Made by a program: the position numbers and the translations under genes. A stretch of DNA of 63,694 bases, counting the filler, from Hyphochytrium catenoides (Eukaryota > Protista > Hyphochytriomycota): NCBI GenBank assembly GCA_900088475.1. It is 9 parts of 9 records of this genome, joined end to end, with 100 filler letters (N's around TTAATTAATTAA, not from the genome) between each part and the next. Parts side by side here need not be neighbours in the genome. Positions count along the whole stretch, not along the records: positions 51,331 to 58,487 come from FLMG01004499.1; 8 more parts are not named here. One strand, 5' to 3'. The notes under the pieces were generated by a model that saw only the letters and a program-made list of their open reading frames with translations, did no database searches and was not told the origin of the DNA. Shown in pieces: positions 50,305 through 55,713 of the stretch. Positions within the stretch are counted from its first letter, which is position 1. Every line of letters starts with the position of its first letter.

Positions 50305-52394
50305 GGTGCTGCTGAAGGCTAAGTCAGCCTGACCGATTGTCACAAAGGCTTCGTTGGTAGGTAGAGAAGGAAGCAAGGGCTATTGTCGATCAGATTCCGA
50401 TGTGAACTGTGTTCAATAGATGCGGCGCGGCGGCGGTGACGACTAGCTTGTAGCTCCTTCAAACAAACTTTCTTGCTCTCCAAGGGATTTTCATCAACAT
50501 AACCTCAGAAGGCAGTTTTAGGCCGGGTTGGCATCAAGAAGAGGAAGTTGACCAATTGTTTGGCACAGTGAAAAGAGGATAGAAAAAGGGGATGACCGAG
50601 AGGCGGGGACAGGGTATTGTGGCTGTTGGATCGGCCTACGTACAGGATTGTCACGGAAAGCGAAGAATAGTTAGGGGTAGTGGACCCTCGGCCATAATCC
50701 CATTGACGAAGAGGAGTGAGAACAGTCTCCAATGACACCTGCTCTGGGGATGGATGACAGGCAGACTCTCCTCGCTTGGTATGAACCAACCACTCTTGCA
50801 AATGATAGTAGAAGTATGGGGCAGCAGAGATGTCGGGTCGCAGAAGATAGCAGAAAAACGAACGAGGCCGATGTCCAGCAGCACTCATACTTCTTATCTC
50901 CCTGTATCTAAAGAAGAAGAAGAAAGCGAATGCTCCTCATGAGTCATGAAGAGGACGACGACAGGACAGGCTCGTAAAGTAGCAAAAGTGTAAGAAGCAA
51001 AAAATCTATCTTAGGCCTGCAGTCACCATAGAACTACTTCTCTTATCCTTTGAAGAAACAGTAGTCGTTCTCCCCGCCTAGTGAACATATCAAGCGGCCT
51101 ATCAAGGTTTTATGGCTGGTTCTACATCTTCCCAACCTATCCACCGCCATGGGTGGCTGGATGTTCTAGTTCAAGAGGTGAAGACGTGAAGACATTGTTG
51201 ATCATCCTTCGTCTTGATGGATTGGGAGGANNNNNNNNNNNNNNNNNNNNNNNNNNNNNNNNNNNNNNNNNNNNTTAATTAATTAANNNNNNNNNNNNNN
51301 NNNNNNNNNNNNNNNNNNNNNNNNNNNNNNCTTCCTCCACCCACCGCTGTCTGCACGTGTGGAAGCCGCTTCACTTGTCTTTATTGCGTATTTGCCTTGG
51401 CCTTGGCTTGAGCTTGTCATTGAGAAGGATGCCAATGTGCCTAGCCGTCCTTGTCTCACCACCTTATATATTCTTTCTCTCTCTCTTCTCTCTCTCCTCT
51501 CTGCCTTCCCTCGCTTCTCTTTTCTCTCTCTCTTATCTCTCTCCTCTTTCCCTCGCTTATCTTTTCTCACCACTCTCTCTCCCCTCTCTACTTCTCCCCT
51601 CTCGCTTTCTCTTTTCTCGCCACTCTCTCTCTCTCTCTTCTCTCTCTTTCTTCTCTCTCCCTTTCTCTATTCTCTAATATTGTAACACATTTCTCCAGAG
51701 GTCAGAAGGCGGGTGGGATCACAAGAACCAGAAGAAGTTTCTTATAGTGTCCCTAACTGGTATCCAAGGACGGCCTTAGAGAAGAAGGCGGTCAAGCGGC
51801 AGGAAGCCCGGCACCTGGAAGCTCAGGGTGAGGACCGCCTTCAGGGTACTGAACCGGGCGGGTGGGCGATCACTAAGGCTAACTTAGTCACTATGAAAAG
51901 CTTAGAATGGGTGGGACCCTATGTGTCCTCCCTGCTATAGGGGCCACTGGGGTTCCAGCTATGGGCAGGGGTGCGTGGGCAGGTCAGAAGGACGGGAGGC
52001 TTATGTAAAACGGTATTGGGCCGCCTTCAGGGTTAACCTCTACGGGCCGCCAGTAGCCGCCACCGTCCGGACTGTCCCTTATAGAGACAAACTCCTCCTG
52101 CGCTCTCAGCTCCTGTCGGCCCGAGGAACAGATGTAATGCTTCACTCGAACAGTCAGCAGTATTGATGTGTCCCGCCGGTTCAGGTTTAATTGTCCATGA
52201 AGGACTTTGGCGGGAAGTCTCGGGCGGGAAGGAAGGGCGTGATGAGATGGCAGAGTTGGTTGGTGCAACTTATCCGCGGGTCAATGTGAGGAAAGATAAT
52301 AGTAGCAGGTCCGGTATCATACCTGGACTGGACCACGAACCTCCAGGAGGCGACCCTTCGCTCTTGTTTCTGGCTAAATATACCTATGGTAAAC

Positions 52395-52429
52395 TGTCCC
52401 CAATGAACAAGGTGAGGCAGGGTTTATAA
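52395..52429 (+). promoter_or_regulatory. Putative snRNA-type (type-3 Pol III-like) promoter: USE-like TGTCCCCAATG, 17-nt spacer, TATA-like box; copies at 55533-55567 and 58393-58427
   Basis: TGTCCCCAATG is invariant in all three units, with identical spacing to TTTATAA/CTTATGA. The TATA-like box lies about 30 nt upstream of the conserved 104-nt block. Confidence 0.55.
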
Positions 52430-52454
52430 GCCCGGGCCGACCCTCAACTCTCAA

Positions 52455-52563
52455 CAAGTCACAGCAGTAGTGACGGCGGTAGAGTGTCCACTTGGTGCAT
52501 GTCCGCGATCTTGGAGTGAGAGATCAAGACGCAGGAGGACCAAGACTTTCCGCTCTCTTTTTT
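52455..52563 (+). ncRNA. Unassigned structured small RNA, copy 1 (~105-110 nt, ending in T6)
   Basis: 104 nt identical to 55594-55697 while the flanks are strongly diverged; 5' hairpin GTCAC/GTGAC; long stem GGCGG/CCGCT, AGAGT/ACTTT, CTTGGT/ACCAAG, GCG/CGC, TCTTG/CAAGA; oligo-T end. Confidence 0.6.
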
Positions 52564-55500
52564 CTCCAATTTTGAGCTTTTTTCTCGATTTCGATTTTCA
52601 AGTCTGCCAGCGCTTGGTATCCAGGAATCTCTCTGCTCGGTCCTTTCATGGATAATGGAGATAAGCTCCGTAGCTCGTTGCGTGCGCTATGTGATGCATC
52701 CAATGCTAATTTATGCGCAACACTAGAGATTGTAGTTCAACAACGAGATCAAGGGCGGGACCATTGGAAAATATAAAGCTGGGCAAAGGATCAAGAGAGT
52801 TTGTGTTTATGGCTAAACGGTCTCACGTGTCGCTGCTGCGTACGTTCGCTATCCCGTCGTGCTTACGCATAAATGCTTTGAGGAGCGTAAGGTGGGCTAC
52901 GCCTTCGGCGTTGGCCACAATAAAGATGAAGCTGACTTAAGATACTAAACAAATTGCTAGAGGTTTGCTTGAGCACTACACTCCCTCATTATGCATATAT
53001 TACTAGCCGACTGTCCTCCGCCGCCGCATATCAGTTCACAGCTGTGACAAGAGGGCATAGGTTATCCTTATGAGATCCTTTCTTGCCATGAGACATCTTA
53101 TGATATACTTGGCCGAACTGGCGAGATCTCTAAAATAGTTGACCATAATTGGGCTCTCTCAACAAGGAAAGTAGGAATCAAGCTCCACATCTCCTACCAC
53201 GTGCCTTGCCTTCCTCTATCATTCGCGACACTAATACTATACGGGCGGCGTCACAGATAGATGAAATAGCGTTGGTTTTCTGGAGCAGTCAACAGCCCTA
53301 TTCGAATTGAGCATACAAACATATTTCTACGAACGGTAGCCACATACATATTTGGCTTCTACTTAGTAGACAAAATCAGGCCACAATAGTCATGCTCTGG
53401 ACTCTGTTTGTGCCTTTGTTTCAGCTCTGTGAGAAAGCAATGTCCTTTATATGCAACCATGATTTGCAAGGAAGCAAAGTACGATGAAGACAGCAAAAAA
53501 TGCTAGTCAATCTACTTTTGCGCACCTATAATTCGAAAGGAAAAGTCGCAAGGAGCGACAGACGAACAGTTCGTTAATGTTTGATCATCTTTTGATCATA
53601 AATTTTTCGTGCCGAGTTCTTGACAGTTGTATCCACCGGGTGAACCTCTACCCCTGTGATTTATTCGACCCTTATTTGGTGCAAGGAGACTGCTGGTCCT
53701 ATTGAGCAGTGCTTCGGTTCGCCTGGCTCTTGCTTAGGTTGTTGCGGGTCTCTGAATGTTTTCTAGTCTCATTGATGAATATCCACGATCGTGCCAGACA
53801 TGTTGATGATCTGAAGTATGTTGGCGTTTGGCTTGTCTTAAAGTTAGCCCTTAGGCCTCATCCCGCTGCAAACTACTAGGAAATTGGCATGTTTCATCTA
53901 CAGACGACTGAGATTGAGGAAAAGACATACACACCTAGGTAGCTCACGAGTGGTTGACCAGAAGTTATAAGTACTACGAACCACCTCTTCTATCGTAGCC
54001 CTATTCTCCTCTGCCAAGTACCGAACACAAGGAGCACGGATAGGCTGTAGTATTTTATTGAGGGCCCTAGAGGCCCATTCAGTGAAGATTGGGGGTCAGG
54101 ATTACGCTGGGACTAGAGACTAGTGGTTCTGAGCGAGGTGCAGCCACAATCTGAAGAACCATGGTAAACATTAATGGAGCGGCAACAGAACCATGAAAAA
54201 GAAAAGAGGGGTCTTCGTCTCGTTCAGTCTCGACTGACGATCGCTTAAAGCGGACAACCGTACCGCCAAGCAGTGTACTACTACTATTAGCATCACTTCT
54301 ACTTGTGAGTGCCGATAGGAGGTTGTTTGCGATAAGTAGAACGTTAGGTGTGCACTTCCTGGCAAGCCTGCCATATTCCTAGGAATTCAGCTCACATTGA
54401 CCGCAGTGTGAGGGACCCGATGAGGCTAGCCAGGCGTATGCGATGCAGTCTCTTCTCTTCGACACTATCTTATGAAGGGCGGTCCTGGTCAGAGGAGTCA
54501 AAGAGTGGCTCTCAAGAAGCATACTTCTCTTTCGCTTTCCTCTTTTCTCTCTTTTTCTTTGCATTTCCTAAGGTTAGCCTCTCTTATCCCCTCTCTCTTA
54601 AATGTTCCTTACTTTTATATCGGCACTTTCAATGGACTGACCTAACGCACTAGGGACATTCTCTCCTTAGATTCGATATATATAGCGCATTCAAAAGACT
54701 ACCCTTTTCAGGTTAAAGTGTTATTGGTCGCTCTCTCGCGCAAACTCCTGTGTGTGGGTTGTCTGGACTGAGGCCTGGCTAGCCGAGGTGGAATCAAAAT
54801 ACCTCACGCTCGATTCTCATTTCACTCCCGCTCACCCTTCTTACATAACATAGAGCCAAACTGCTGATCCGTGGCAGTCGGAGACCGACAACAAGTTGCC
54901 GCAATCTTACTTATTACTGGACAGCCAAAGGTCGTGAACACTCGATTAGGGCCTTCGCTGGGCAGAAAGAAATTGAGGAAGAGAGGAGCTGGTCCACTTA
55001 CCTGTAAGATACACATAGAAATCCAAGTTTAAATCTTCAGACTCATGTAGTGGGACCATAGTCGTTTGCCCCCGTTTGAATGCATGTCTTCTATTTGTGC
55101 AAGTATCATAAGTAATGTCATATTTATGAAGGTGTCGCTAACAGACGACGCATACAACGGTGCACGGGAGTGTAAAACGGTTGTACTGGCCTCCCCGGCT
55201 GTCTCTCTCTGTCCTCCCTTTCTATCTCTGTTGTGTGTCGCTAACAACTACAGTATCGCCATTCCCTACTCGGTGCTTTAAGCAACATCATACGCTGCTT
55301 CCATCAAGCCAGATGGTTTACCCATTAAAGTCCCACTAGCGAGATGGCCTCCATCGCTGCAAAGGTATGTTTCTATTGACTTCCGTCAGGGATGCTCGTT
55401 GTGGCCATGGAACCTTCCACGGTACATCATAACGCTTTTTTTAACAAGCTGTACACGCCGCCACACCAAGACCACACCAACAGCTCCCGTGACCCTTCGC

Positions 55501-55593
55501 TCTTGCTGCTCCTACACAAACCCATGGCGAACTGTCCCCAATGGACAAGTGCAGGCAGGGCTTATGAGCCCTGGCTAATCCTCTAACTCTCAG

Positions 55594-55713
55594 CAAGTCA
55601 CAGCAGTAGTGACGGCGGTAGAGTGTCCACTTGGTGCATGTCCGCGATCTTGGAGTGAGAGATCAAGACGCAGGAGGACCAAGACTTTCCGCTCTCTCTT
55701 TGTCTTTATTTTT
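55594..55713 (+). ncRNA. Unassigned structured small RNA, copy 2
   Basis: Identical 104-nt core, same upstream promoter-like module, and a T-rich 3' flank with its first T5 run at about 55709-55713. Confidence 0.6.

Follow-up and report, generated by a model that had tools for sequence, protein, structure and literature searches.

A candidate family of multicopy genes encoding a ~100-nt non-coding RNA behind a type 3-like promoter in Hyphochytrium catenoides

Why would 104 nucleotides stay unchanged between two repeat units that otherwise align only in patches? This question is raised by a locus of Hyphochytrium catenoides (GenBank assembly GCA_900088475.1) that lies in the window, the whole 63,694-nt stretch of DNA analysed here, in which nine parts of nine records of the genome are joined by filler. 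The locus belongs to the part at 51331-58487 (record FLMG01004499.1), hereafter the piece, and all coordinates are those of the window. On the sequence evidence, we give somewhat better than an even chance to the reading that the conserved block represents a family of multicopy genes whose product is a ~100-105-nt non-coding RNA, read from an external promoter of the SNAPc (type 3) kind, most likely by RNA polymerase III (Pol III). The RNA family appears to be uncatalogued, while its kind of promoter, that of type 3 small-RNA genes, is already known.

Conservation of the 104-nt block

Repeat finding and alignment confirmed the identity of the two copies that the initial annotation had reported, with 104 of 104 positions matching between them.

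52455..52558, plus strand: candidate small RNA, copy 1; 104/104 to copy 2; likely start at A52456, A52457 or G52458, likely end inside the T-run
55594..55697, plus strand: candidate small RNA, copy 2; same sequence as copy 1

The identical stretch is contained in a near-identical block (52446-52562 versus 55585-55701) with 98% identity over 117 nt and one mismatch at 52454. Upstream of the RNA block, from -103 to -10, copies 1 and 2 agree in 74 of 95 aligned columns (78%), and in the first 42 nt of the 3' flank only 24 of 57 aligned columns agree (~42%). Self-BLAST aligned 52352-52574 to 55491-55714 at 88% identity, and 55114-55584 paired with 57982-58443 at 73.5% identity (self-BLAST and alignment). 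Between these regions, the spacers at 52575-55113 and 55715-57981 (2.3-2.5 kb) gave no self-BLAST alignment beyond one 46-nt patch, in keeping with the patchy alignment described earlier for the surrounding 3-kb units. Given flanks at 78-85% identity, the chance of a run of 104 unchanged bases is ≤1e-7.

The limits of the conserved block lie about 30 nt past a TATA-like box on one side and at a T-run on the other. Taken together, the identity of the block, the drifted promoter (22%), the unrecognisable spacers and the placement of these boundaries suggest that the limits reflect selection on a transcript. Drift or homogenisation of whole units would not predict such boundaries, and neither concerted evolution of whole units, nor a pair of long terminal repeats (LTRs), nor an assembly collapse would yield them; short-tract gene conversion could do so only by coincidence.

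Promoter elements upstream of the block

The region upstream of each copy was compared, together with a third, previously unreported promoter copy further along the piece. The following elements were recognised.

52352..52454 (copy 1; counterparts 55491-55593 and 58350-58443), plus strand: proximal promoter block; 74-78% pairwise identity among the three copies
52395..52405, plus strand: USE/PSE-like element TGTCCCCAATG, copy 1; about -61 to -51; exact in three promoters
55533..55543, plus strand: USE/PSE-like element, copy 2; exact TGTCCCCAATG
58393..58403, plus strand: USE/PSE-like element, copy 3; exact TGTCCCCAATG
52423..52430, plus strand: TATA-like box TTTATAAG, copy 1; -33 to -26; from sequence and alignment
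55561..55568, plus strand: degenerate TATA-like box CTTATGAG, copy 2; from alignment
58421..58428, plus strand: TATA-like box TTTATAAG, copy 3; from alignment

The element TGTCCCCAATG, which resembles an upstream sequence element (USE) or proximal sequence element (PSE), occurs exactly at 52395, 55533 and 58393 and at no other site in the piece. It keeps a fixed spacing in the three promoters, so the invariant upstream element put forward by the initial annotation was recovered in full. The TATA-like box, which had been placed ~30 nt upstream of the RNA, was found as TTTATAAG in copies 1 and 3 but only in degenerate form in copy 2. The box sits 17 nt past TGTCCCCAATG, and the near-identical block opens 15 nt after the box, at 52446. 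A transcription start at a purine at 52456-52458 would set the box at about -30 and TGTCCCCAATG at about -60.

USEs with a CCCA core have been tabulated for many lineages, for example TCCCAWCATC, ACCCATAA, RTCCCWTA and GNCCCAYW (PMC8287931), and the CCCA core of TGTCCCCAATG agrees with them. In green algae, as in human, type 3 promoters with a TATA box are reported to be served by Pol III and TATA-less ones by RNA polymerase II (Pol II); in land plants and ciliates, the polymerase is set by the USE-TATA spacing, the Arabidopsis distances being 23-24 bp (Pol III) and 32-34 bp (Pol II) (PMC8287931). With TGTCCCCAATG at ~-60, a TATA-like box at ~-30 and a T-run, the layout fits that of small-RNA promoters of the SNAPc (type 3) kind. 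A match to the Pol III B-box consensus had also been noted, but it has no value as evidence: GWTCRANNC occurs 3 times in the piece versus 2.95 expected in shuffles, which is chance level.

Downstream end and predicted fold

The two copies differ in what follows them.

52558..52563, plus strand: T6 closing copy 1, likely Pol III terminator; from the sequence; identity between the copies stops here
55709..55713, plus strand: T5, first run of at least 4 T after copy 2; 12 nt past the identical block

The T-rich 3' ends noted earlier were thus borne out for copy 1, where T6 follows directly, but copy 2 has no immediate terminator, its downstream order being T3, T3 and then T5.

A further similarity was seen past the RNA. 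At 52570-52583 and 55709-55722, 12-25 nt beyond it, a conserved T-run is followed by G(TG)AG(C/G)TTT, and the same motif is present in a variant contig of X2, a DNA run of the same organism (loose end TCCTCCTTTTTTGAGCTTTTT). It could serve as a reserve terminator, or it could be comparable to the 3' box of small nuclear RNA (snRNA) genes.

On the plus strand, the RNA was predicted to form two hairpins. The 5' hairpin (RNA positions 4-20) has 5 bp, GUCAC/GUGAC, and a 7-nt loop. The second is a long interrupted hairpin (RNA positions 21-100) with GGCGG/CCGCU at its base and a bulged U that separates two 5-bp segments of the predicted lower stem. This two-hairpin fold is both the minimum-free-energy and the centroid structure at -36.6 kcal/mol and prevails among the structures that lie up to 3 kcal/mol from the optimum, whereas the minus strand folds worse (-30.1 kcal/mol, z -0.86). 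In this respect the fold described in the initial annotation was reproduced; its statistical support is weak (z -1.68) and is weighed below.

Known RNA families and coding potential

A cmscan search with 4227 Rfam families, which had been suggested as a check of novelty, returned nothing at E<=1 for the piece as a whole, nor anything at E<=10 for a 141-nt segment alone with the laxest filters. Spliceosomal snRNAs, 5S, 7SK, MRP/P, small nucleolar RNAs and small ribozymes were all without an Rfam match, and ARAGORN detected no tRNA or tRNA-like gene. The C/D boxes UGAUGA and CUGA are absent from the RNA, and there is no canonical AU4-6G Sm site in the 104 nt. Telomerase RNA was rejected as a candidate, the RNA having no telomere-template-like run of the CCCTAA type. 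The lack of known-family hallmarks claimed at the outset was therefore upheld by every one of these checks (Rfam, ARAGORN, C/D boxes, Sm site and telomere template).

A protein-coding reading was also rejected. No stop-free frame longer than 117 aa exists in the whole piece, and the RNA block is therefore taken as not coding; the longest stop-free frames are low-complexity translations of a CT-repeat microsatellite. The piece has a GC content of 47.8% and a CpG observed/expected ratio of 0.69, which is moderately depleted. At its left end, 51450-51680 is a CT-rich imperfect microsatellite of ~230 bp (TCTCTC..., periods of 9-11 nt).

Copies and homologues in other data

Among the sequencing runs offered in which the stretch occurs, none is recorded as RNA; contigs of four DNA runs were compared with it. 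In the DNA run X2, 98 contigs fell on the 3.7 kb at 51700-55400, in four identity classes from >99% to <90%. These contigs are short, mutually variant and densest over the promoter and RNA bins; their summed depths are not a copy number. Variant contigs are present across the stretch, and the unit, spacers included, is therefore multicopy in the genome of this organism.

Metagenomic data also contained the RNA. A contig of a rhizosphere metagenome (run X3) spans 52475-52586 (112 nt) with 2 differences, after which the flanks diverge, and a contig of a food-production metagenome (run X6) spans 52352-52512 with 16 differences and has an upstream variant in common with X2. Under a second species label (organism B), 14% of the words sampled from the stretch were present. 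The data suggest that the RNA may be conserved across species.

Other collections yielded little. Exact-pattern scans of viral contigs gave 0 matches, as did an exact scan of metagenome contigs with the central and 5' 20-mers. In prokaryotic genomes, the exact scan gave one match only, the 21-mer GGTGCATGTCCGCGATCTTGG (L001:3216-3236), which was rejected as a homologue: it lies inside an open reading frame (ORF) of an alphaproteobacterial soil metagenome-assembled genome, its flanks are unrelated, and ~0.3 chance matches are expected. Nothing was found in protein collections with the two frames open across the RNA or by exact lookup of two ORFs of the window. In the full text of open papers, 14-16-mers of the RNA had 0 matches, and for a 10-mer from the promoter element the sole matches were in primer lists without any relation to it.

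A third promoter and a distal conserved block

The initial annotation had described two units, and this account stands for the RNA copies; the third promoter copy, with a different sequence downstream, had gone unreported. It takes up ~150 bp at 58297-58443 and is intact to about -10, where its similarity to units 1 and 2 ends.

58444..58487, plus strand: sequence behind the third promoter (GTAAAGAGTACTGGAAGTTACTGCTTACG...); unrelated to the RNA; cut by the edge of the piece
55154..55260, plus strand: distal conserved block of unit 2 (counterpart 58023-58131); about -440 to -335; sub-blocks 91-94% identical

At the third promoter, Rfam returned only a 5.8S fragment (E 0.14) that lies on the other strand and inside the promoter, and this match is spurious. 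Behind this promoter there may lie a different small-RNA gene that uses the same promoter, or the gene may have been pushed away by an insertion. Since the same promoter is joined to at least two different downstream sequences, its arrangement suggests that it is modular.

Conservation is higher in the distal block than in the stretch that separates it from the proximal promoter. The block carries AACGG repeats and ACAAC/GTTGT inverted arms, and it has a high summed contig depth in run X2. According to self-BLAST, the block is absent upstream of copy 1. A second RNA gene was considered here and rejected because neither strand gave a fold signal, and for this reason the block is read as probably enhancer-like. 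Upstream of copy 1, at 51700-52005, short dispersed repeats, GGTCAGAAGG(C/A)GGG(T/A)GG and GGGCGGGTGGG(C)GATCAC, stand in place of the usual distal promoter sequence.

Weighing of the explanations

The reading as a multicopy small-RNA gene family has as its basis what was observed directly: the anatomy of the units, the sharp boundaries of conservation, the multicopy status and the lack of any known-family signature. Several findings weigh against it. The predicted fold reaches a z of only -1.68, with a shuffle mean of -30.6 kcal/mol and 9 of 200 shuffles as stable. The USE-TATA gap of 17-19 bp is below both Arabidopsis classes (PMC8287931), the TATA box of copy 2 is degenerate (CTTATGAG), and copy 2 is without a run of at least 4 T until 12 nt downstream; the weak box and the delayed T-run of this copy also weigh against a firm Pol III assignment. 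The B-box match occurs at chance frequency (3 versus 2.95 expected). No homologue came from the viral, metagenome, prokaryotic or protein collections, and the metagenome contigs with the RNA may belong to the same organism, as X6 shares its upstream variant with X2. Lastly, the 104-nt identity may be due to short-tract gene conversion.

That possibility leads to the explanation that the block is not a gene and belongs to some repeated or mobile sequence, for instance a repeat that carries a promoter or an LTR-like stretch, its identity having arisen from short gene conversion or an assembly effect. The neighbourhood is indeed repetitive, the whole 3.7 kb with its spacers being covered by short variant X2 contigs; the CpG depletion (0.69) and the lack of long open frames recall decayed repeats, the fold does not stand out clearly from shuffled sequence, and copy 3 has the promoter without the RNA. 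However, conversion or collapse is not expected to open ~30 nt past a TATA-like box and close exactly at a T-run, the promoter is 22% diverged versus 0 changes in 104 nt, and the X3 contig keeps the RNA (2 differences in 112 nt) beside diverging flanks. LTR pairs, moreover, are identical over their full length and have internal regions that can be aligned, whereas the spacers here do not align, which rules out an LTR or transposon as the main explanation. We consider a non-gene origin unlikely. A highly diverged member of a known family beyond the reach of the Rfam models in this lineage, for example an atypical snRNA or a Pol III RNA of the Y, vault or 7SK type, is improbable to a similar degree. 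Y and vault RNAs are products of ~100-nt type 3 Pol III genes that are clustered in vertebrates; in these RNAs a stem closes off the main domain and the 3' end is a U-tail, and the Rfam models of both families were built from animals. With a bulged U that separates two 5-bp segments, the lower stem bears a loose likeness to the bulged helix of Y RNAs, and the apical loop lies between two GAUC motifs, an arrangement shared with the 5' hairpin of 7SK. Against such a kinship, cmscan with lax filters on the 141 nt found nothing at E<=10, the 5' end makes its own hairpin, whereas Y and vault RNAs have theirs paired to the 3' end, and the evidence for A and B boxes is at chance level. As for 7SK, the RNA has one third of its length, and GAUC/GAUC pairing is not the favoured fold.

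The RNA might also be a spliced-leader (SL) RNA or another Pol II snRNA-type RNA, in which the 5' 38-41 nt, ending in UUG/GUG (RNA positions 41/42), would be trans-spliced to mRNAs; this we judge quite unlikely. Nematode and trypanosome SL genes are driven by SNAPc-type promoters, and trypanosomatid SL genes end at T-runs. The gene is multicopy in the source organism, and clustered multicopy genes would meet the high consumption of an SL RNA; a lineage-specific leader would be expected to miss Rfam. The length of ~104 nt falls in the 75-123 nt range of SL genes, which are themselves multicopy, and an exon of 36-39 nt ending in WWG and followed by GU is the euglenozoan and flatworm pattern (PMC3795323); the candidate exon has 38-39 nt with a start at 52457/52458, and 38-41 nt depending on the start. 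However, according to a review of SL genes the Sm site is always present in SL RNAs, whose exons have 22-25 or 36-39 nt (PMC3795323), and no AU4-6G site exists here, the nearest sequence, AUCUUGG, lying inside the most stable stem and needing 5.4 kcal/mol to be freed. The candidate exon is GC-rich, not AU-rich, and without UUU, the intron opens with GUG and not GUA, two hairpins are predicted versus three stem-loops, and conservation covers all 104 nt and not the exon alone. The SL explanation would also need trans-splicing in a lineage whose leader is printed in no open paper. Its more specific form, a spliced leader of a soil eukaryote lineage without described trans-splicing, with AUCUUGG as a non-canonical Sm site and kinetoplastid-like T-run termination, is very improbable.

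Proposed working and significance

For the small-RNA gene family, Pol III appears roughly twice as likely as Pol II because of the TATA-like box, the T-run and the lack of an Sm site; the last of these argues against a Pol II Sm-class snRNA. The working outlined here, that is, transcription, the polymerase, the RNA ends, the fold and the role, is read from sequence features. In typical units, the promoter would consist of the CCCA-core element TGTCCCCAATG at ~-60, the TATA-like box at ~-30 and the distal block at ~-440 to -335. Transcription by Pol III would start at a purine at 52456-52458 and stop in the T-run after the gene, so that the RNA would end in oligo-U at its 3' side. It would then form the 5'-terminal 5-bp hairpin followed by the long interrupted hairpin closed by GGCGG/CCGCU, and would most plausibly scaffold an abundant ribonucleoprotein. 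The proposal that this RNA is the first of a family of abundant Pol III RNAs not described so far is tentative, and we give it a little less than an even chance.

The locus at present amounts to a well-formed gene prediction. If transcribed, it would provide an abundant small RNA that is fully constrained in sequence and falls in no catalogued family, from an organism whose DNA also appears in rhizosphere, soil and food-production metagenomes. Time and again, lineage-specific type 3 RNAs have turned out to be the cores of important particles, as exemplified by plant and ciliate telomerase RNA and by Class I, vault and Y RNAs. The conserved promoter could also serve as a handle for finding other small-RNA genes of the organism and for driving guide RNAs.

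Comparison with known systems

In its presumed mode of working, the locus is akin to type 3 genes (U6, plant U3, 7SL, MRP, and plant and ciliate telomerase RNA), with a CCCA element at ~-60, a TATA-like box at ~-30, a 3' T-run, a product of ~100 nt and no convincing internal promoter. As in U6, the RNA would have a short hairpin at its 5' terminus and oligo-U at the other end. Unlike these genes, it has no sequence or structure match to them, its USE-TATA gap is 17-19 bp versus 23-24 bp for Arabidopsis Pol III genes, and the plant USE, RTCCCACATCG, differs from TGTCCCCAATG.

A likeness to vault or Y RNAs had been proposed earlier on the basis of paired ends, a B box and the upstream promoter, and it proved loose only, given that the 5' end forms a hairpin with itself. 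Common to both are a length of ~100 nt, upstream promoter elements, clustered genes, a long interrupted stem with a bulge and a 3' U-tail made by Pol III (the tail being predicted here). In contrast to Y and vault RNAs, the long stem does not include the 5' hairpin, a Ro-binding helix sequence is lacking, and no Y_RNA match was obtained from Rfam at E<=10. SL RNA genes resemble the locus in size, in clustered multicopy arrangement, in the snRNA-type promoter and in a possible UUG/GU junction, but the RNA here has no canonical Sm site, U-rich exon or three-stem Y shape. Arrays of 5S ribosomal DNA likewise combine an invariant gene of ~100-120 nt with a fast-diverging spacer and a T-run terminator; the locus differs in having no Rfam 5S match at any threshold and in its spacers, which are 3 kb long and not homogenised.

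Dictyostelid genomes are AT-rich, unlike the 48% GC found here. Their Class I RNAs offer a precedent: they are lineage-restricted, with 18-39 genes per genome, a USE-like element ~60 nt upstream and downstream T-runs (PMC7919456). Like the RNA described here, they are multicopy, start in AAG (a predicted start for the present RNA) and have no known homologues elsewhere, but they have 42-65 nt, 5' and 3' termini that pair, and an 11-nt motif that is conserved (PMC7919456), whereas the present RNA has ~104 nt, its own 5' hairpin and identity between the copies at every position. The locus does not belong to this class, given the differences in size, end pairing and motif, yet as a phenomenon it resembles the dictyostelid Class I RNAs most.

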